From NCBI GenBank assembly GCA_002189035.1, contig NEEC01000011.1, positions 3,162,001-3,226,000 on the forward strand: a stretch of 64,000 nt of DNA, in the 5' to 3' direction. This document shows, in pieces, positions 3,465 through 14,691 of this stretch. Numbering within the stretch: the stretch's first letter is position 1; every line of letters starts with the position of its first letter. The translations under genes and the position numbers were made by a program. This DNA is from Utricularia gibba. Taxonomy: Eukaryota > Plantae > Magnoliophyta. A model generated the notes under the pieces. The model was not told where the DNA came from and searched no databases. It was given only the letters and a program-made list of their open reading frames with translations.

Positions 3465-5001
3465 ATGGCAACTCTTGACGTAGAAAGTGTGGATTGTGTG
3501 TCGTCAATAGATGGGGTTGATGATGAAGAGTTTCAAACTTCATTCTCATCCAATCATCGGAATCCTCATCACCTGCATTCTTCGAAACTTCAAAATAGAT
3601 TGACTTCTGTGGCTGGGCTGCCTCCTACTAGCGTCCATGAACTGTTGGAATGCTCTGTCTGCACTAACTTTATGTACCCACCAATTCATCAGGTCCGTTT
3701 ACACTTGTTGCTTCTGCTTTGTTGTGGTGATATCTCTGTGTTTTTGCATATATTCCTTATTTTTTTTGAAGAAGAAGATCTGAGACAGGATCCATGAAAT
3801 TTGCATGATGATCTATTGTATCTAGAAGATGGTCCCTGCCCTGATCTCTCGAACAGTGTTTTAGGTTCTCAGTTAATTGACAAATTTTTGGTTGGAATAG
3901 TGCCCCCTATGTTGATGTTGAACAACAGTAGTAGTCAGCATGAATGTGAAAACTTTGTCCATAGACATGAGTCTTTGCAATGGTTGCCCATGTGAGTTGA
4001 TAATCCACTATGTGCATAGGATTGGATTCACAGTTTCTCTTTGCAGAAGAATTGTGATGTGATAATCGGCTTGTGGCTGCCTGTAATTGGTGATTTAGGA
4101 GTTCACTGGAATATGTTTGATTCACCAACTCCACCCTTTTTGAACAGTGTCACAATGGGCACACTCTCTGCTCCACCTGCAAAACAAGGGTGCATAATAG
4201 ATGCCCTACTTGCAGACAAGAACTGGGGGACATCAGGTGTTTGGCTCTGGAGAAAGTTGCTGAGTCGCTGGATCTACCTTGCAGGTACTACTCGTTCGGC
4301 TGCACTGAAATATTTCCCTACTACACCAAGCTTAAACATGAAGCAGTATGCAACTTCCGACCATATAACTGCCCCTACGCTGGATCTGAATGCATTGTGA
4401 CTGGAGACATTCCTTACTTGGTTGCACACCTCAGAGATGATCACAAAGTGGATATGCATAGCGGGTGCACCTTTAACCACCGCTATGTTAAGTCAAATCC
4501 TCGTGAAGTCGAAAACGCTACATGGATGTTGACAGTCAGTCCAGTGATTTCTCTGCTGCTGGTTCTGTTATAGTTTTATCATCATTAGTGCAAGAATGAG
4601 CCGATGTATGTTTTTCCTTGATTCATCAGGTATTCCATTGTTTTGGTCGATACTTCTGTCTCCACTTCGAAGCATTCCAGCTGGGAACATCCCCAGTTTA
4701 CATGGCGTTCCTTCGTTTCATGGGCGATGAAGTTGAAGCCCGCAACTACAGCTACAGTCTAGAGGTAGGAGCAAACGGGAGAAAGCTCATCTGGGAAGGG
4801 ACACCAAGAAGCATACGTGACAGTCACCGGAAGGTTCGGGATAGTCATGACGGCCTCATCATCCAACGGAGCATGGCGCTTTTCTTCTCAGGTGGAGACA
4901 GAAAAGAGCTTAAGCTTCGAGTAACCGGGAAGATTTGGAAAGAGCAGCAAAATCCTGATACCGTCCCGACTTCCCTACAACAAAATTGTTCTGGTCTTTA
5001 G
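3465..5001 (+). CDS. SINAT: Seven-in-absentia (SINA/SINAT) RING E3 ubiquitin ligase, 3 exons (3465-3692, 4148-4534, 4630-5001)
   Basis: Spliced protein has RING CxxC...PPIHQCHNGHTLCSTCKTRVHNRCPTCRQELGDIRCLALEK, a SIAH zinc finger and the TRAF-like domain (VFHCFGRYFCLHFEAF...SIRDSHRKVRDSHDGLIIQR). GT-AG introns keep the frame. Confidence 0.95.
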
Positions 5002-5434: not shown

Positions 5435-8400
5435 ATGGCTACTGCGGCTTATGCCTCTCTGCTTTCTGTGAGGCAAGTTATCGGCGGAATCCGTCAACTC
5501 CATGATTCTGAAAGGATAGCTCTCTGGGACACTCAGCAGCTTCGGAGTCTTGATGACATTGCTCTATCCTTACAGGAATTTCTTGAAAAAAATCGTTCTT
5601 CAGAGGCGGAGGATTTGCTTCTTCAAATCCCTGTTCTAGCTACTGAAATACAAGCTACTTTAGATGGGGAGATCGTTAACCAGCTCAAGAGAAACTTTGC
5701 TGCTGGCTTCACATGTTTTATTCGTCCTGTTGAACTCTTCATTCTCAAGGTACAAGACTCCATTAACAATGGTGGGCTATCTCCAAAAAGGAAGAAAATT
5801 GACGATTGTGGGCTTGCGCACACTGTGGAAAGCCAAAATGCCCCCGGTTCAACGATTGCATTTACCCCGAAAGACCGAATTGCTGCGGTGGGAATTTACA
5901 AAGATGTGGAATCTATAATTGATAACCTCTCTGGTTCTGATCCGCGACTTCGAACAATCATGGTTTACACAGGGGGTTTCGAAGGTATCTCCTTCTTTGT
6001 CTGCCTTCAGCGAGATCGCCGGATACAAACGAGTTTTGAGTTGTTGTTGTGGGGAGATATTTCTGATGAAAGCAGTGCACTTTCTACTCTCAGAAGCTTC
6101 GTGGGAGTAGAAAATGGGCAAGGGAGCTTCGAGGACTTAGGCGAGAAGCTGCATAAGAAGCTGTTAAATCGCAAGTATTGCATTCTGCTAAGTGATTCTA
6201 GTTACTTGTGGGAACAACTGAGGCAATATCTCCCGGATGATCGAAATGGAAGTGCAGTTATCGTGTGCACAGCATCGACGAAGTCGTATGGTACAACATA
6301 CCCCCATTATACTCTGGCAATCGATGACAAGTATAAGCTTGATGAATACACTCTGGGAATCGATGATTTTTCCAATGAAAAGTACAATCTTGTGTTGGAT
6401 CGAATCCCGAAACAGTTGTATGCGTGTGATCACACTCTTCTAGATGCACAACAGCTTCAAAGTCTCCAAGCCCAATTTGAAAGTCTACAGAGATGTATGG
6501 ATGATCATCATCACTCTCTAGGCTATGAAACAGAGTCTTTAATTCGAGAAACTCTTGCCATTGTGGTGAAATCCCGAAACCTCGCTGACCAGCTTGGAGG
6601 ATACACCGAACAAGGCTTTTCATCGGTTATTGAACCCTTGGATAAGTTGATCAAAAGACTAGATTCTATCAGGAATAGTTTGCTGCTGGTGAAGTTAGTA
6701 AATGTGGACATTTCCTCTGTGCATTCTTTTTCTGCTGATGTTTCACTTGGGAATACCAGAGATAGAGCAACTGCTGCGGTGGGATTTGACAAGCACGTGG
6801 AATGGGTAATGGAGAAGATAAAGAGTGAGGAACGGAGCCTTCAAGTCATTCCCATAGTTGGAATGGGTGGAATAGGTAAGACGACTTTAGCTCGTTGTGT
6901 TTTTGATAAAATCTCCAAGACTAGGAGATTTGATAGAGAATATTGGTGCACACTGTCTCAAGAAAGTAATGTTCTTCATGTTCTTAAAAGCATTCTGAAA
7001 GATAGGAGCCATGGAAACCAACTTGAGGATGGACATACATTGCATGAGGAGCTCAGTGGGTACAGGTACTTGATCGTGCTAGATAACATGTGGAATTCTG
7101 GTATTTACGAGCAACTGCAGCCTTATCTGCCAGAGGGTATGCAGAGTCGAATCATAGTGACCACAAGGATGTCTGATGTGGCTGATTCAGTGAAGTCACA
7201 ACACTCTTATCCTCTAGAATTTCTAAATGAGAATGAGAGTTGGACTCTATTGCAACAAAGGGTCTTTGATGGAGATGACTGCCCAGACTCTTTAGTGGAA
7301 ATCGGGAAAAATATTGCAAAGAGTTGTGGTGGGCTTCCATTATCATTAGTCACCATTAGTGGGGTGCTTTCAAAATCAAAGAGTGTTTTGAATTGGAATC
7401 GCATTGCACAAGATGTGAGGAGAGTTTATGGTGGTGGGGATTATGAGAACTGTTTCAAAATCCTATCTTTGAGTTACAGCGTTCTGCCTATCTATTTGAA
7501 AACATGTTTTCTCTACTTCGCATTTTTCTTAGAAGAGGAACCGGTCCGTGTGACTGAACTGCTCCGGTGTTGGATTTCCAGTGGATTGGTGAAGCCCGTA
7601 GAAGATCGAACAATGCAAGATGTTGCAGAAGGGTACTTGAAGGAGATGATTAACAGGTACTTGGTTTCAGTCCGGGGTGCTAATCTTATTGGGAAGATCA
7701 ACTACTGCGGCGTTCATGATCTTTTACGAGAGTTTTGCATAAGGGAAATAGAGAAAGAGAAGTTCCTTGCCACTGATATCCCGAGACTACAGATATTTGA
7801 TGCAGAAATTAAAAGCTTGTGCAACTTGTGTAGCCGATCTGTGTCCCAAGCCTGCAATTTAGACTTGGTGGGTCTCAAGGTTTGCCAAAACTGTGTCAGC
7901 AGATTCCCATATCTTTGTAGATCAAGGTTTGTGAACTTCACCTACTTCGACTGTAGAGTTGGAAGTTACGAATGGAGGAAGAAATGTGACCAGTTACTGC
8001 CTAAAGTTACTGCAATTTGCCACAGGTGCAAACATCTGTCTTCTGTCTTGGAGGAGCCAGTGATGCTCCAGTTCCCCGAGCTTTGCGAATCATGCATGGA
8101 GTTGCTATCCTCCCTTCTCTATATGTCACTTGTTCCTGAAGGGGAGGTACATTTCACTCATCCCAATCCCACCACCGTGCAGTACATCAATTGCAAGGCC
8201 AACCCATCCTTTGAAATCTTTGCATTTGGAGCTCCGTCACCGATCCTCCTTTTCTGGAACCTACAGTTCCTTGTGATCGAAGATTATTTTTTGGACTCTG
8301 AAACCTTTTTCCCAGATGAGATATGGGAGATGCAGCGACTGAAACATCTTGAAATCAGCGATTTCTGCTTACCCGAGCCAGAGATGAAAAAAAATGTCTC

Positions 8401-9064
8401 TGTTTTGAAATATCTACACAGACTCCACGTTAAAAAGCTGCCTTGGAGCGAGGAGGTTGCTAAATTGCTCCCCAATTTGATGAAGTTGAAGGTAAACGAT
8501 TGCTGGGATGTCGAGATTTTGCCAGACGAGTCTCTGCAAACCAGTAAACTCCAATCTCTCTACCTCCGTGACAGTCCAGTCTCCGCGCTGGGGAGCTTGA
8601 GCTCCCTCTGCTCACTGAAGAAGCTCTCTTTGGAGGGATTCATTTCCTACGACTGGGGAGCAATGAGCGCGATCGGCCGCTTGCCGAATCTGGAAGTCCT
8701 CAAGCTGATCGACTTCGGTAACCCAGATGGGGAATGGGACACAACAGAAGAGGAGTTCCCCAAGCTGAAGGTGCTGCTGCTCGAGGGAAGGGGCCCTGGA
8801 GTCTGGAGAGCTGAGGGCGATGCTCCTTCTTTCCCAGAATTGAAGCGGCTGATCATCACCAGAATCGGGAAGGAGCTTGAGGTCCCTCTCCAGATCGGAG
8901 ACATCCCGACGCTGTGCTCCATCCGTCTGGAATTCGTTCACCCAATCGTGATCAAATCGGTGGTGGAACTGCTGAAGGAGAACGAGATCCTGGAAGTATA
9001 TCTGGATAAAAAGCTGATCACCAAATCTGATTTGGAAGACGAGGAGAGACTGATTTGGGCGTGA
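5435..9064 (+). CDS. CC-NB(degenerate)-CC-NB-ARC-LRR immune receptor, 1209 aa, single exon, sensor-like
   Basis: P-loop GMGGIGKTTLA, YLIVLDNMW, SRIIVTTR, GLPL (CGGLPLS), RNBS-D CFLYFAFF, MHD as VHD, and C-terminal LRRs (LPNLEVLKL, FPKLKVLLL). An earlier partial NB-like copy lies at about aa 150-285. Confidence 0.95.
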   Translation: MATAAYASLLSVRQVIGGIRQLHDSERIALWDTQQLRSLDDIALSLQEFLEKNRSSEAEDLLLQIPVLATEIQATLDGEIVNQLKRNFAAGFTCFIRPVELFILKVQDSINNGGLSPKRKKIDDCGLAHTVESQNAPGSTIAFTPKDRIAAVGIYKDVESIIDNLSGSDPRLRTIMVYTGGFEGISFFVCLQRDRRIQTSFELLLWGDISDESSALSTLRSFVGVENGQGSFEDLGEKLHKKLLNRKYCILLSDSSYLWEQLRQYLPDDRNGSAVIVCTASTKSYGTTYPHYTLAIDDKYKLDEYTLGIDDFSNEKYNLVLDRIPKQLYACDHTLLDAQQLQSLQAQFESLQRCMDDHHHSLGYETESLIRETLAIVVKSRNLADQLGGYTEQGFSSVIEPLDKLIKRLDSIRNSLLLVKLVNVDISSVHSFSADVSLGNTRDRATAAVGFDKHVEWVMEKIKSEERSLQVIPIVGMGGIGKTTLARCVFDKISKTRRFDREYWCTLSQESNVLHVLKSILKDRSHGNQLEDGHTLHEELSGYRYLIVLDNMWNSGIYEQLQPYLPEGMQSRIIVTTRMSDVADSVKSQHSYPLEFLNENESWTLLQQRVFDGDDCPDSLVEIGKNIAKSCGGLPLSLVTISGVLSKSKSVLNWNRIAQDVRRVYGGGDYENCFKILSLSYSVLPIYLKTCFLYFAFFLEEEPVRVTELLRCWISSGLVKPVEDRTMQDVAEGYLKEMINRYLVSVRGANLIGKINYCGVHDLLREFCIREIEKEKFLATDIPRLQIFDAEIKSLCNLCSRSVSQACNLDLVGLKVCQNCVSRFPYLCRSRFVNFTYFDCRVGSYEWRKKCDQLLPKVTAICHRCKHLSSVLEEPVMLQFPELCESCMELLSSLLYMSLVPEGEVHFTHPNPTTVQYINCKANPSFEIFAFGAPSPILLFWNLQFLVIEDYFLDSETFFPDEIWEMQRLKHLEISDFCLPEPEMKKNVSVLKYLHRLHVKKLPWSEEVAKLLPNLMKLKVNDCWDVEILPDESLQTSKLQSLYLRDSPVSALGSLSSLCSLKKLSLEGFISYDWGAMSAIGRLPNLEVLKLIDFGNPDGEWDTTEEEFPKLKVLLLEGRGPGVWRAEGDAPSFPELKRLIITRIGKELEVPLQIGDIPTLCSIRLEFVHPIVIKSVVELLKENEILEVYLDKKLITKSDLEDEERLIWA

Positions 9065-10186
9065 TGTCACGCGAACGCCAGCATCAGTTCTCTTTGTAAT
9101 AATTTATGATTGGAGTTTGGCTCTAAACTATTCATTATAAAAAGTTTAATTCAAAATTATACCATACATACCTCAATTTGTTTTTATCATAGAATTTATA
9201 ATGATTTATGATTGAAGTTTGTTAAGATACTTCAATTTGTAAAGAGTTTAATAATGAACTTTTGAAATTATATATTTAATATTTTATATTATCAAAATTG
9301 ATCCATTTTGATACTGATATTGTGAATAATGATACATAATATAAGATATAAATACAGTATAACAATTATCACTTTGATTTATATGAGACGTGAACATAAT
9401 GTAATTCTAACATGTTATCATTTGATTTGTCTAACTTCAAATGTAAATATGAAAAACTTTAAATATTTTTGAAAATTTTTTGGTTTTTTGGTTTTAACAA
9501 TTTGAGATATTTTTTTAAATAATTTTAAAATTTAGAAATTAAATTTTTTATATTGATCTAAATTTGAAATGTTATTTGTAATTTTATTATTAAGTTATCT
9601 GTAATTTTTTGGTTTAATTATAAACTTATATAGAATAATAATTGAAATCAAGTTTAATAATTTCTATCTATAAGTTAAAATATTTTTAAAAATAATAATT
9701 AATATTTGAAATATATTGCTCAATTTTCAATTTAATAATACAGATACATAGATATAAATGCAGTCATTAAGGCAGCTGCATTTTCTTGCATAAAATATAA
9801 TATGAGGACAGCGAGTCCTTGACATTATAAAGACCCATATACATTTATTTAAATAAAAAAATATGTGGAATGTTTTTATTGGCTCTATTTTTGTATTTTA
9901 TTTGTTCTCTGGCCAATAGGGAAATTTTTGAACCTGAGGAAGAGTAAGCGCTTGTGGGTGTGGATGTGCCCTCGGGGTTCCGTGTTGTTGAGTGAACTTC
10001 TCCAGCATGCCGTGTTTTTTGAAAGAGTCGGACTCGTTTTCTGTTGAGAGTCCCGATCGGCACACAGTGAACATTTTTTTCTGGTAGTCTAGAAGTCAAT
10101 CGGCGTGATGGGTTGTTGAAGAAGAGGGAACAGAGAAGAGGTGAGGAGGAGGGAGGCGGTGGGGCGGTGGAGAGTCGAGTTTCGTT

Positions 10187-12941
10187 ATGGCCGTCAAGAT
10201 TGCTCTCACGCTTTTCGAGGAGTACTTGAAGCAGTTCGTAGTGGGGAAGGTGGCGGACATCATCAGCTCGTTTTTCTCCTCCGAGAAGGAGAATATCGAG
10301 AAGCTTCAGAAGCGAGTTTTGAGTTTGAAAGCGGATCTCGCCGACGGGGTCAACAGGAAATCCAAAGGGGAAGCCCTCAAGAAATGGGAGAAAGCCGTCC
10401 GCGATATCATCGATGAAGCCGAGGACGCCATCGACGCGGCCATGACTGCGCAAGTGCTCCGCAAACGTGGAACTCCTGCGGATCTCAAGGGAATTCTGGA
10501 AAAGATAGACCAAGACTTCGGCAACGTCAGGGCTGAGTTCCGCATGTTGGAGCTGCAGGCGCCCAACCAGGCCGCCGGAAGACCTGCCGCTTATCGATTT
10601 AGAATGGTGATGATTTGAATTTGATCTGATACTCCACAGAGTTATTTGCACGGAGATCTGGCATGTGTTTTCTTACTTGGTATGTTTTTTGTTTGGTTAG
10701 AAAGAACCGCTGAAGGACAAGAGGGTCGTTGGTTTCGAGGATGACATACAGAAATTGATTGAAATGCTGCGAGAAGAGGAGAAGCGGACGGAAGCCATCT
10801 CTATAGTCGGGATGCCAGGGCTGGGGAAGACGACTCTGGCATCTAAAATCTACCACCATGCCGCTATGAAGCATCACTTCACGAAGCTGTATTGGGTTAG
10901 TGTCTCCAAGGAGTACAATATGAAGGAGATTTACACACAGATTCTCAAGCAACACAGGCAGACCCGGGGGACTGATTACTCCACATGGTCGGAATCTGAT
11001 CTGCTGGATAAAGTTCGGGAACGCTTGGAAATTGTGAAGTTTCTACTGGTCGCAGATGATGTCTGGCCTGGCGATGCATGGGAAAAAATCAGCGCCATCC
11101 TACCGATACGTAATGACGCATCGTGGAAAGTGCTGATAACAAGCCGTGATTCCAACTTGGCTGTGAGAGCAAACGCTAACCGACGTCCCTACGAGCTTCG
11201 GTTTCTGAATCAGGAGGACGCGTGGACTCTGCTGCAACTGGAAGTGTTCGACGAAAAGGGCAGGTGCCCACCGGAACTAAAAGAAATCGGACGAAAGATA
11301 GCGAAAAAATGCAATGGACTACCGCTTGCCGTGGTCGTGACAGGAGGGATTCTGAGAGACAAAGAACGAAGAGAAAGCGAATGGGAGAAGGTAGCAGACG
11401 GGGTGGTGATCGCAGATTCTGAAGACATAAAGGGTCTTGAAAACATCATATCACTGAGCTATGATGAAATGAATGATGAGTTGAGAGATTGTTTCCTGTA
11501 TCTCTCCGTGTTTCCAGAGGACTTTGCTATCCCCGCCAGGAAGCTGACACGCTTATGGATCGCTGAAGGCCTAATATCTGAACAGTCTGAAAACAACATG
11601 AGCTTGGAGGAGATTTCTGAATCGAATCTGAACCAGCTTATAAAATCAAATCTGGTCATGGTTGAGAAAAAGGGCGTTGAAGGTTTCCCCTCAGTTTGCA
11701 AGGTTCATGACGTGATTCGTGATTTCTGCAAGAGCAAGGCTAAGGAGCGCAATTTTGTAATGGAGCTCAGGAACCTCCCCGGGGAAGGTTTCCGTCCCAA
11801 GATTGCCGACGTTGGTATGCACCGCCGGCTGTGCATCCATTCCTCTGTTCTGGAATTCTTCAAGAAAAGACCCAAGTGTCCTCGTCTGCGTTCCTTCCTT
11901 TGCTTCACAAACACTAGCGTCGAAGTTCAATTGGAATTGGCTCCACGTATCAGGGAAGCGTTTGAGCTACTCAGGGTCTTTGAGGGAGAATCGATCAAGT
12001 TTCCCAGACCATTCCCTAAACTTACAGAGCTTATCCACCTGAGGTATATCACCTTCGCTGCAGGAGATCACTACCAGAAATTCCCTGGTAAGATTTCCAA
12101 TTTCTCCAACTTGCAGACGCTGGTCATCGAATCTTCCACTAGATTCACTGTCGACGCAGATTTACTGACACTGCCTCGATTGAGGCATTTGATCATAAAG
12201 GCTTACATTGCTATTGAAAAGTGGAGAGATGATCTTGAACCCAATGAGACTCTCCAAACTCTCAGTAGAATATCTGCTGAGAGTTGCAAGGTGGGTGTGT
12301 TGAAGAAGACTCCCCATCTCAAAACCCTGGGCATTCGAGGAGACATGAAGTGTCTATTGGGTGAGGACTCTTTGTATGAGTTAGCATACCTCAAGAAGCT
12401 GAAGGTGATTCATGTTCCGGGATCTGAGAGCTCGCTGGTAGGTTTCCTTGACAACACGAGATTTCCCGAAAGCTTGGAACACCTCACTTTACAGGAGACA
12501 AACCTGGATTGGAGTTGCATGAATCAACTGAGCATGCTCCCGTGCCTCAAAGTTCTGAAATTGAAAGACCATGCATTCAGCGGAGGTACAGAAGAATGGA
12601 ATGTTGCCGGCTATGGATTCCCACGTCTGGAGCACCTTCACATCCAACGCTGTAAACTCAAGACTTGGACCACTGAGAAGGGTTCATTCCCCAGACTCCG
12701 ATCTCTTGTTCTGAAGATCTGTGAGAGTTTCGGTGAGATCCCCAAGTGCTTGGCGGAAACACTCGAAAAACTGGAGTTGAATCATGTGACAACAGAAACA
12801 GTAAAATCCGCCATTGCGATCAGGGACACAGTGAAGCTCAATCAGGATGGATCCTCCATCGGAAAACGTGAGTTTGTGCTCAACATTGCCCCCGACGATC
12901 TACAAGGTTCAACAGCTAGCCCCCAGAAGCGACCCAGGTAA
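10187..12941 (+). CDS. CC-NB-ARC-LRR immune receptor resembling the NRC helper clade; exons 10187-10606 and 10701-12941 (possible extra micro-exon 13012-13021)
   Basis: EDVID-like AEDAID and a phase-0 GT-AG intron between CC and NB that keeps the frame (KEPLKDKRVVGFEDD). Motifs GMPGLGKTTLA, ADDVW, CNGLPLAVVV, CKVHDVIRDFC, RRLCIHSSV...RLRSFLCF and LLRVFEGESIKF resemble NRC-family proteins as I recall them. Confidence 0.9.
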
Positions 12942-13731
12942 CAGACAAGCATATGCTACATGCATCGTCTGGGGTGCCATCTTTCCCACTAATATCCTTC
13001 GTCTTCGCTAGGTTGCAGTAAGAAAAGCAAACCCAGGAGCAGCAGCAACACGCACAGTGAGCGATTTTGTACGGGCAACCGGAGACCATATTCCTTCAAG
13101 TTGCTCTCCTCCTCCCCAGTTGCGCTAACCATTTTCAGTTAATTTTAATTATTTTAAACATTAAAAATATCCTTTTTATTCACATTTTGGAATATTTATT
13201 TAATGATATCTGACTTTTCCATACCCTTTTTTATCAACTCCCATAAGTGACAATAACATATATGATTAAAAAAATACTATGTTTAGTATAAATTCTCAAA
13301 CAAATTAAAATTTTAGAATCTTCAATTTTTAAAATAATAATGTTTTTTAATTTTTAATTTAAAATCATAAATTTATGAAGTCGTCCTCGTCCATGGCCGA
13401 ACCTGACACCAAGCGTGCGTGTTTCTCGCGTTGGGTCCCACACCAAGATTTTAAAAATTGAATTTGGGAATTTTGGTGTTTTTTAGGAAATTAATAAAGC
13501 AGTCAAAAAAATATGCTCTGTTTCCAAGCTATAAGACGATTGCTTCTCCCTCCCTGCTGGAGTGACGATTGTCGCTCCTCCCGTTACGGCCGCTTGTGTC
13601 TTCTTCCTTCCTCTGCTTCTCTGCACCTGGTCGTCACCCACGTGGTGATTGAAAAGGGGTCTGCTTTTTCTGGTTCTTGTTCTGGGGGTTTCGGTTTGGT
13701 TTTGATTCTCCTGGGGAGGTGTGTTCTTCGT

Positions 13732-14691
13732 ATGGGTGAGCGGTTGCTCTGGCCTGTCAAGTTCACGGAGCACAAGAAGGTCGCATTTTTGAAGAGGAAG
13801 AAGGGAGATGGGGGTAGCGAGTTTGCTCCGAAAACTGTCAAATTCTATGTCACTGATCCCGATGCCACCGATTCCTCCGGCGACGACGAAGCTGGACTTC
13901 TGCCGCGGAGGAGGGTTAAGAAGTTTCTCAGCGAGATTAAATTCCATGCGGGTTCCGCGGATGCTGCTCTCTCTCCCAAATTGAAGAAGATGAAGGGGAA
14001 AGGGGAAACAACGGAGCCCCTGGATCGGGAGATTCCCCGGAAATTTAGAGGCGTACGGCAACGGCCATGGGGGAAGTGGGCGGCGGAGATACGTGATCCT
14101 TTCCGGAGGGTTAGATTGTGGTTGGGTACGTATGATACGGCGGAGGAAGCGGCGATGATGTACGACGTCGCAGCGATTAAGCTTCGTGGCCCTGACGCTC
14201 TGACCAACTTCGCACCCCCGCCGGTGAAGGACACGGCCGCGGAGAGCAACGATACGTCGGTGTCTAGCTACGGTTCCGGTGGGGAGTTGAAGGCGCTCTC
14301 TTCCCCTACCTCCGTTTTCCGGTACGCCAGCGACCAAGACAGTGAACACGCCCCCATGATCAAAACAAGTAAGCGTCCGGAATCACTCTGTCCTGCGGCG
14401 ACAACCCCCGCTGATCAGTACCGCTTCACCACGCCGGCCCCCGCTGATTATTCCAGCGAGTTCTCCGCGGCGGAGGAGAACACCCACTACTTCAACCTAG
14501 CGGTGGAAGAAGACCCATTTTTCAACGAGCTGTGCCGTTACCCAGATGATGCATTCCCAGATACCACCGCCGCCATTGAAGATGTGAAATACTACTACTC
14601 GGTACAGGAACTGAGCAGTTGGCATCAAATCGACCATTACTTCCAGGAACCCCTCCACCTGTCGGATTCATCAAGGCGTTTGTTTTTTTAA
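13732..14691 (+). CDS. CRF: Cytokinin response factor (CRF-domain AP2/ERF transcription factor), intronless
   Basis: CRF domain [18 protein letters not shown]...[12 protein letters not shown]2 domain [19 protein letters not shown]...[12 protein letters not shown] and the SPTSV motif. Confidence 0.93.

Follow-up and report, generated by a model that had tools for sequence, protein, structure and literature searches.

A gene of the NRC sensor clade lies 1.1 kb from a gene of the NRC helper clade in Utricularia gibba and may form a sensor-helper pair with it

Paired NLRs of the RGA4/RGA5 and RRS1/RPS4 type share a promoter, from which they diverge head to head, and include an integrated decoy. 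NRCX, which belongs to the helper clade, reportedly has no canonical, functional MADA helix at its N-terminus, and the helper linked to the tomato Hero/MeR1 cluster is one that we take to be NRC6. The Hero/MeR1 sensors of this large, multi-gene, root-specific Solanaceae cluster reportedly lie together with their own helper, a member of the lamiid-expanded clade (PMC12236159), so that functional linkage is not restricted to NRC0. Linkage of NRC helper and sensor genes is considered ancestral in the large asterid NRC network, with NRC0 as the conserved example so far (Sakai et al. 2024, PMC11371149).

In this work, we analyzed a 64-kb stretch of Utricularia gibba DNA (the window), in which a sequence-only reading had pointed out two co-oriented, very dissimilar CC-NLR genes with intact ORFs, 1.1 kb apart. 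This description holds: both genes, NLR1 and NLR2, lie on the forward strand, and their products share 26.8% identity across 914 aa. As no further NLR was found in the 64-kb window and the E-values of the domain matches are extreme, chance is excluded as an explanation of the pair. The features, in window coordinates, are the following.

5435-9064, + strand: NLR1, single-exon uninterrupted ORF of 1209 aa, stop TGA
5435-6394, + strand: NLR1 N-terminal module, sensor-type first helix MATAAYASLLS followed by a degenerate CC and NB duplicate
6788-7735, + strand: working NB-ARC and winged helix of NLR1 (Pfam)
6860-6892, + strand: NLR1 P-loop, within the working NB-ARC
7070-7093, + strand: NLR1 Walker B, LIVLDNMW (motif comparison across clades)
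7709-7723, + strand: NLR1 GVHDL, at the MHD-type motif position
7817-8134, + strand: Cys-rich part of NLR1 with four CxxC, after the winged helix and before the LRR
8237-8935, + strand: NLR1 LRR domain (Pfam LRR_14, residues 935-1167)
9065-10186: intergenic gap of 1122 bp, in which the 3' end of NLR1 and the promoter and leader of NLR2 must lie
10187-12941, + strand: NLR2, 886 aa after removal of the 94-nt intron, stop TAA
10187-10606, + strand: NLR2 exon 1, CC domain, 140 aa (Pfam Rx_N)
10187-10240, + strand: NLR2 non-canonical first helix (surrogate MADA profile, CC alignment)
10418-10435, + strand: NLR2 EDVID-like AEDAID (CC alignment)
10607-10700, + strand: NLR2 intron, 94 nt, GT..AG, phase 0, at the CC/NB junction
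10701-12941, + strand: NLR2 exon 2, NB-ARC, winged helix and LRR, 746 aa
10809-10841, + strand: NLR2 P-loop GMPGLGKTTLA, intact
11043-11066, + strand: NLR2 Walker B LLVADDVW, intact
11700-11714, + strand: NLR2 KVHDV, MHD-type motif, intact

The NRC superclade was recovered with a support of 100/97 in an NB-ARC tree of 104 rows that included published anchors. The outcome that the sequence-only reading had named as refuting, a position of NLR2 outside the NRC helpers, did not occur: NLR2 falls within an NRC-H clade of 56 rows (99/99), which also comprises published anchors from sesame, olive, Phtheirospermum and Camellia together with Solanaceae representatives, and the AU test rejects its exclusion from this clade (p 0.006). 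Furthermore, NLR2 aligns end to end with NRC2, NRC2a and NRC3 at 477-487 bits, compared with 177 bits for ZAR1 and Sr35. Its place is in the Lamiales subclade of the lamiid-expanded NRC-H group. The closest sesame relative, XP_011087333, is classed as NRC-H and not as NRC0 by Sakai et al. 2024 (PMC11371149), whose published tree groups it with tomato NRC1/2/3/4 and separates it from NRC0; the closest olive and Phtheirospermum relatives are likewise NRC-H and not NRC0 (Sakai Data Set 4, PMC11371149). Membership of NLR2 in NRC0 was rejected on the published class of these relatives and on the rejection of a joint group of NLR2 and the basal NRC0-like rows (p 0.004, in a tree whose rows hold no certified NRC0 sequences). 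The earlier analogy with NRC0 helpers thus fails as a statement of ancestry. NLR1, which had been called sensor-like, is indeed a member of the NRC-S clade: it is sister to the Genlisea aurea proteins P0155/P0179 (100/99) and belongs to a 16-row clade with three sesame NRC-S anchors (100/96), nested in a 37-row sensor clade (100/89), and all six sesame proteins looked up among the NLR1 matches are NRC-S by the classes of Sakai et al. 2024. Taken together, we regard it as very nearly certain that NLR1 is an NRC-S clade member and NLR2 an NRC-H clade member in tight linkage; they are known NRC-family members and not a new kind of system.

The compact NLR2 with its CC/NB intron, as first described, was recovered, and Pfam assigns to it Rx_N (E 5.6e-10), NB-ARC (E 3.5e-55), WH and LRR_14. 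If read unspliced, the gene meets an in-frame stop three codons inside the intron. We accept the splicing since the intron position is conserved with a sesame intron after codon 142, supported by alignment of a cDNA-type contig to genomic DNA; the position is also conserved in Paulownia, Erythranthe and Buddleja. The P-loop, Walker B and VHD had rightly been called intact, the GLPLA motif is intact as well, and the helper-typical GMPGLGKTTLA and TSR are present. The first helix of NLR2 itself appears to be non-canonical for MADA, a point that the sequence-only reading had overlooked. On a surrogate MADA profile, an HMM built from the N-termini of 128 NRC-H proteins that differs from the published MADA-HMM (cut-off 10), NLR2 scores 0.5 bits against 11.6-51 (median 45) for the 128 helpers, and the CC alignment shows a one-residue offset and a five-residue insertion in the first helix, which counts against functional pairing. 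Because a canonical MADA helix appears to be missing, the competence of NLR2 as cell-death executor is less certain than had been assumed. At the positions matching L9, L13 and L17 of NRC4, which have been demonstrated to be critical (PMC6944444), NLR2 carries hydrophobic residues whichever register of the alignment is used.

In NLR1, Pfam detects NB-ARC (E 3e-54), WH and LRR_14, and the clade-typical sensor motifs GMGGIGKTTLA and TTR are present. Its start resembles the frequent sensor starts MAYAA, MAAYA and MAVAA, and its N-terminus scores -0.7 bits on the surrogate profile with no MADA-like match, so that both N-terminal hallmarks proposed for a sensor stand. The extra domains seen earlier turned out to be a degenerate self-duplicate and a Cys-rich insert. 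Residues 335-577 recur in degenerate form as residues 30-279 (29% identity, E 3e-18), a copy in which the P-loop and Walker B are gone, the P-loop position reading VYTGGFEGISFF; residues 192-282 retain a weak NB-ARC remnant (E 0.0011, under the Pfam cut-off). This N-terminal duplicate module is absent from both Genlisea relatives (925 and 1019 aa). The Cys-rich stretch has no Pfam match; two of its CxxC are conserved throughout the NLR1 subclade, and about 70 residues with the two further CxxC are unique to NLR1. The Walker-B change was also corroborated, the second Asp being replaced by an Asn found in just 2 of 209 sensor-clade sequences; to judge from the motif, this rare residue could alter or disable the nucleotide cycle of NLR1, which counts against functional pairing. 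Both genes are apparently transcribed, as judged from matches in five RNA-type runs, in which 0.57-0.80 of the sampled words of NLR1 and 0.40-0.53 of those of NLR2 exon 2 were present.

With respect to the NRC0/NRC0-S cluster of asterids (PMC11371149), the locus is similar in that (i) an NRC-H gene adjoins an NRC-S gene at well under 50 kb, (ii) the sensor N-terminus is non-MADA and of the MA.AA...SL type, the NRC0-S consensus MAHAAVVSL resembling the start of NLR1, (iii) neither protein carries a named integrated domain, and (iv) the expected logic would be activation of the linked helper by the sensor. It differs in that NLR2 lies outside the NRC0 subclade, its grouping with the basal NRC0-like rows being rejected as above, and in that NLR2 fails the surrogate MADA profile whereas 90% of NRC0 orthologues have a canonical MADA (PMC11371149). 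With Solanaceae NRC2/NRC3 (8xuo, 8rfh, 9fp6, 9ri9), NLR2 shares the CC-NB-ARC-LRR architecture, the length, the helper-type motifs and the end-to-end alignment; unlike them, it belongs to a Lamiales-specific subclade, its first helix has diverged, and it lies 1.1 kb from a sensor whereas NRC2/NRC3 are genetically dispersed from theirs. As in the Hero/MeR1 cluster, a helper of the lamiid-expanded clade is found beside a sensor, although here there are two genes of different subclades. NLR2 is similar to NRCX in being a helper-clade protein that appears to lack a canonical MADA helix, but its critical hydrophobic positions are kept and it is sensor-linked, which NRCX is not known to be. Adjacent dissimilar NLRs, one a proposed sensor and the other a proposed executor, are also found in the RGA4/RGA5 and RRS1/RPS4 pairs; these differ from NLR1-NLR2, which is a tandem on the + strand and belongs to the NRC superclade. 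A head-to-head integrated-decoy pair was rejected, both genes being on the + strand and the extra parts of NLR1 being its own degenerate duplicate and the Pfam-less Cys-rich stretch.

Related loci in other Lamiales give a divided picture. Perilla and Salvia have a sensor upstream and a helper downstream on one strand, as in NLR1-NLR2, with halves belonging to sister subclades of NLR1 and NLR2, which counts in favor of pairing. However, the CC exon is missing from the downstream helper in both, so these loci are not plain two-gene pairs, which counts against it. So do the sesame locus, where sensors of a different subclade flank the nearest relative of NLR2, the finding that the helpers of Buddleja, Paulownia and Erythranthe have no sensor within 10 kb, and the lack of a helper beside the Genlisea relative of NLR1. 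On one sesame chromosome, NRC-H genes occur together with sensors of the NLR1 subclade within a span of 0.3 Mb.

We consider the mechanism of the established NRC model the most likely one: a pathogen effector would be detected by NLR1, whose NB domain would then activate an NRC helper, and the activated helper would form a helper-only resistosome leading to cell death; the adjacent NLR2 would be the first candidate for this helper. We infer that NLR1 may signal through NLR2 and that NLR2, although its first helix has diverged, may have remained able to execute cell death. Most NRC sensors of other plants rely on unlinked helpers, and no flanking-gene synteny was found around NLR1-NLR2; both points count against pairing. 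No hidden MADA-type exon was detected in the gap, with 9668-9705 masked. On the other side, the gap between NLR2 and the NRC-S gene lies within the 50-kb linkage criterion of Sakai et al., and a precedent is provided by the NRC0 helpers, on which the sensors linked to them depend in four species (Sakai et al. 2024, PMC11371149). On balance, the genes and their placement make NLR1-NLR2 a credible candidate for a functional sensor-helper pair, an interpretation that we favor by a narrow margin over its negation. Of the linked helper-sensor unit that had been proposed, the clades, the linkage and the intact genes stand, but a minimal, self-contained network is not supported.

Several other explanations have to be considered. 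That the two are ordinary unrelated CC-NLRs with a superficial NRC resemblance could be argued from the top identities to named proteins, just 46% for NLR2 and 37-42% for NLR1, but this idea is close to refuted by the strongly supported superclade, NRC-H clade and sensor subclades with their published anchors, by the agreement of the AU test and by the end-to-end match of NLR2 to NRC2, which scores nearly three times that to ZAR1. A more serious objection is that the genes are neighbors and not dedicated partners, left from a larger mixed NRC-H/NRC-S cluster compressed by genome reduction, so that NLR1 may depend on a different NRC helper, with NLR2 perhaps acting for other sensors. Both sesame arrangements speak for this, as does the fact that helper and sensor are mixed in only 13 of 438 linked NRC-superclade pairs, the networks being mostly dispersed (Sakai et al., PMC11371149). 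Still, Perilla and Salvia share the order, the orientation and matching subclades, all linked NRC0 pairs tested to date are functional (PMC11371149), and a 1.1-kb gap is unusually tight; we consider such a remnant possible but unlikely.

It could also be that NLR2 is no longer a cell-death executor and, its pore-forming first helix having diverged, acts as an NRCX-like modulator or is a helper in early decay. Its N-terminal score is the lowest among 129 helper-clade proteins, the helix has its insertion and register shift, the terminal branch is very long (0.84, median 0.25), and an atypical network modulator of the NRC clade is known (PMC9851556). The fast evolution may, however, be a lineage effect, since NLR1 (0.81) and one of the Genlisea proteins (0.83; the other 0.32) are long-branched as well. 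Besides, the 886-codon ORF is intact, the P-loop, Walker B, GLPL, MHD-type and EDVID-like motifs are kept, the equivalents of the critical NRC4 leucines (PMC6944444) are hydrophobic whichever register is used, and the low score comes from a surrogate and not from the published MADA-HMM. Loss of the executor function appears improbable, somewhat more so than the remnant of a larger cluster. Coming back to the functional pair, a fuller reading, which we put forward as speculative and on the whole doubtful, would make the locus a surviving, unfused example of an ancient sensor-then-helper unit of the core Lamiales that is separate from the NRC0 cluster. In Perilla and Salvia, the helper CC exon would have been lost and the genes spliced into one sensor-helper fusion protein, while here the two genes would be a functional module whose helper, with a re-registered non-canonical first helix, is still competent.

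The locus sits in a small, very gene-dense Lamiales genome; for this lineage, loss of the alternative helper pathway, with RNL helpers and EDS1/PAD4, has been reported (Baggs et al. preprint). It contradicts a preprint statement that the Utricularia gibba genome has no detectable NLR genes, a minor contradiction, as the same preprint elsewhere puts their number below 50 and retention of NLRs is reported by Baggs et al. A working pair would offer a small, cloneable two-gene module for studies of sensor-helper specificity, as well as a test of the tolerance of the MADA helix to sequence change. Altogether, NLR1-NLR2 presents tight helper-sensor linkage that uses a helper from the expanded, normally dispersed clade.

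The window carries two NLR genes on the + strand within 5435-12941, a sensor-type gene (NLR1) followed by a helper-type gene (NLR2), flanked by two genes of other families:

5435-9064, + strand: NLR1, a single ORF of 1209 aa with NB-ARC (Pfam E-value 3e-54), winged helix and LRR region
10187-10606, + strand: NLR2 exon 1, 140 aa, Rx_N-type coiled coil (E-value 5.6e-10)
10607-10700, + strand: NLR2 intron, 94 nt, GT..AG, phase 0
10701-12941, + strand: NLR2 exon 2, 746 aa, with NB-ARC (E-value 3.5e-55), winged helix and LRR
4190-5001: SINA-type E3 ubiquitin ligase gene, seen as two ORF pieces with the domains Sina_ZnF and Sina_TRAF
13513-14691: AP2/ERF gene, the neighbour 3' of NLR2

The sequence-only reading had described two co-oriented, very dissimilar NLR genes spaced by 1.1 kb, the second with an intron at its CC/NB junction, and each of these points held: both genes are on the + strand, their proteins are 26.8% identical, the gap between them measures 1122 bp, and a GT..AG intron is predicted at the expected place. 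No further NLR was found in the 64-kb window. Gene packing at the locus is very dense, with 434 bp from the end of the SINA gene to NLR1 and 572 bp from NLR2 to the start of the AP2/ERF gene. In NLR2, the unspliced frame meets a stop three codons inside the intron. A sesame relative has an intron after codon 142, as seen by aligning a cDNA-type contig to genomic DNA, and the protein match is interrupted at residues 131-138 in the Paulownia, Erythranthe and Buddleja relatives. The relatives of NLR2 too have an intron at the CC/NB junction, and its conserved position supports the NLR2 gene model. Searching with the 140-aa CC exon turned up neither a close relative nor a fragment of a spliced transcript. 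In five sequencing runs of guessed RNA type, the fraction of sampled NLR2 words present was 0.40-0.53; for NLR1 it was 0.57-0.80, also in five guessed-RNA runs, four of them shared with NLR2. One run that contains the sequence is a 2016 'plant metagenome'.

Comparison with solved structures and phylogenetic analysis both bear on the family membership of the two genes. NLR2 matched NRC2, NRC2a and NRC3 from the NB-ARC start to the LRR end at 477-487 bits, NRC4 at 391 bits, and ZAR1 and Sr35 at 177 bits; the match of NLR1 to the NRC helper structures was confined to the NB-ARC, at 238-250 bits. Database searches gave Lamiales proteins as the closest relatives of both genes, with identities of only 46% (NLR2) and 37-42% (NLR1). 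The accessions of some relatives were obtained and then classed through the supplement of Sakai et al. 2024 (PMC11371149): the NLR2 relatives checked from sesame, olive and Phtheirospermum are all members of the NRC helper clade (NRC-H) and none is NRC0, and the sesame relatives of NLR1 that were checked belong, six out of six, to the NRC-dependent sensor clade (NRC-S). NB-ARC segments were taken from 422 retrieved proteins and an overview tree was built first; the main tree has 104 rows and was computed with IQ-TREE under LG+C20 by PMSF, rooted on a Ricinus CNL. It recovered the NRC superclade with support 100/97 and, within it, a 56-row helper clade (99/99) that includes NLR2 together with all published NRC-H anchors, the Camellia proteins placed basally in the published tree, and representatives of Solanaceae, Ipomoea, Cinchona and Saponaria. 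Two of the Solanaceae representatives, the retrieved proteins P0311 and P0301, are NRC-family by PDB searches, which ruled them out as NRC1-4 orthologues. Inside the helper clade, NLR2 belongs to a core-Lamiales subclade of 27 rows (100/99), where its closest neighbours are a Buddleja protein and the sesame XP_011087333 group. NLR1 falls in the sensor clade, joined by two Genlisea aurea proteins (100/99) and nested with them in a 16-row clade (100/96) containing three sesame NRC-S anchors. This grouping, together with the absence of close relatives from annotated proteomes, points to a species of Lentibulariaceae, probably a bladderwort. The motifs typical of each clade, GMPGLGKTTLA and TSR in NLR2, GMGGIGKTTLA and TTR in NLR1, agree with these placements. 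The proposed sensor type of NLR1 and helper-clade membership of NLR2 are both supported, and trees with NLR2 outside the helper clade were rejected by an AU test (delta lnL 48.9, p 0.006). The placement that the sequence-only reading had named as contrary to it does not occur.

The same reading had likened the pair to NRC0, the helper subclade that is clustered with its own sensors, and here the evidence went the other way. The published tree of full-length NRC-H proteins places XP_011087333, with 100% support, in one clade with the other sesame NRC-H proteins and tomato NRC1/2/3/4; NRC0 forms a separate clade. In the 104-row tree, four starred nodes part NLR2 from the basal NRC0-like rows of Camellia, Rhododendron and Helianthus; forcing NLR2 together with these rows, a group chosen after seeing the tree, cost 51.8 lnL (p 0.004). 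Short tags from the paper's supplement detected no true lamiid NRC0 in the retrieved protein set, the nearest being Camellia NRC-H at 75-78% in those pieces. We accordingly reject an NRC0 type for NLR2 on the published classifications together with the AU test against basal NRC0-like rows, in a tree that holds no certified NRC0.

Most NRC helpers carry the MADA motif in their N-terminal first helix, and we made a surrogate HMM by taking the 24 N-terminal residues of each of 128 full-length helper-clade proteins. These proteins scored a median of 45 bits with a minimum of 11.6, and the sensor clade a median of -0.3. NLR1 scored -0.7, in line with the earlier view that it has no MADA-like helix, and NLR2 scored 0.5. 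In the CC alignment, NLR2 is offset by one residue and carries an insertion of five residues in its first-helix region, and an EDVID-like motif is retained. No alternative MADA exon was found 5' of NLR2, where 9668-9705 is masked. By this surrogate profile, the predicted first helix of NLR2 is not a canonical MADA motif, which weakens a simple helper reading of this gene. It may still be functional; the residues at the positions of NRC4 L9, L13 and L17, which are critical in NRC4 (Adachi et al. 2019, PMC6944444), are hydrophobic whichever register is taken. The terminal branch of NLR2 is also very long (0.84; median 0.25), possibly through a lineage effect, as long branches are likewise seen in NLR1 (0.81) and in one of the two Genlisea proteins (0.83).

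NLR1 has peculiarities of its own, and both the Walker-B change and the extra domains that had been noted in it were confirmed. The N-terminal 320 residues form a degenerate copy of the protein's own CC and NB, in which the P-loop and Walker B are lost; this duplicate module is missing from the Genlisea relatives. In the working NB-ARC, the second Asp of Walker B is replaced by Asn (LIVLDNMW, 7070-7093), a residue found at this position in 2 of 209 sensor-clade sequences, both Genlisea relatives having Asp-Asp. The other addition is a Cys-rich stretch after the winged helix (7817-8134), to which Pfam gave no match. Its CxxC...CxxC arrangement is common to the whole NLR1 subclade (Genlisea, Sesamum, Andrographis) and missing from the sister subclade, so that these two CxxC motifs are a clade feature rather than one specific to NLR1, which carries about 70 additional residues with two further CxxC.

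Linkage of the two types was also seen in other Lamiales. Annotated proteins of 1583-1599 aa (P0150-P0154) from three Perilla loci and two Salvia species contain two NB-ARC units each. The first unit belongs to the sensor subclade sister to that of NLR1, and the second to a 22-row helper group including NLR2, except in Perilla P0150, whose second unit falls in the adjacent helper subclade. As in the window, the sensor comes first and the helper follows it on the same strand. The gene models use a donor that precedes the sensor's own stop by a few codons and join it to the conserved exon-2 acceptor of the helper, for instance at these loci:

L006:12480-12800 (Salvia miltiorrhiza): NRC-S joined to NRC-H NB-ARC-LRR
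L001:12440-13400 (Perilla frutescens): NRC-S joined to NRC-H NB-ARC-LRR

These proteins look like sensor-helper fusions, and may be natural fusion NLRs of Lamiaceae or, alternatively, an artefact of annotation; a helper CC exon was not found within 10 kb at these loci. In sesame, the nearest NLR2 relative has two sensors at 3.4-7.3 kb, of a different subclade from that of NLR1, and Sesamum indicum CM002358.1 4.25-4.54 Mb (loci L009 and L010) holds NRC-H of the XP_011072129 group and NRC-S of the NLR1 subclade (XP_011072143 group). Spanning about 0.3 Mb, this region forms a large cluster in which helpers and sensors are mixed. No sensor was found within 10 kb of the helper in Buddleja, Paulownia or Erythranthe. 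The NLR1 subclade has two members in Genlisea aurea (locus L004, KE528346.1), namely M569_04260 and M569_08671; no helper adjoins M569_04260, and no Genlisea protein is among the best 120 relatives of NLR2, whose counterpart may be absent from a fragmentary assembly or lost. Microsynteny, which had been put forward as a check, gave no support, with no shared flanking genes between the window and the Perilla, sesame or Genlisea loci. Altogether, the evidence fits, short of proof, an ancestral unit of core Lamiales in which the sensor preceded the helper; alternatively, the pair is what is left of a mixed NRC cluster.

From the original interpretation, the linked NRC-S and NRC-H pair stands on predicted gene models and tree placement, but its NRC0 type does not, given the trees and AU tests, and the idea of a minimal, self-contained network gained no support. 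The pair is a reasonable candidate for a functional unit. For Rx-NRC2, what has been proposed as conserved is the mode of binding and the orientation of the domains, rather than a residue-level signature. NRC sensor-helper pairs are already a known kind, to which NLR1/NLR2 adds one more. Lentibulariaceae are reported to have lost TNLs, RNLs and EDS1/PAD4 while keeping some NLRs (Baggs et al.), and the NLR-atlas preprint of Liu et al. (10.1101/2021.02.10.430603) puts the NLR genes of U. gibba at none detectable in one passage and at fewer than 50 in another. If the window is truly from U. gibba, the statement that this species has no detectable NLR genes would be wrong.
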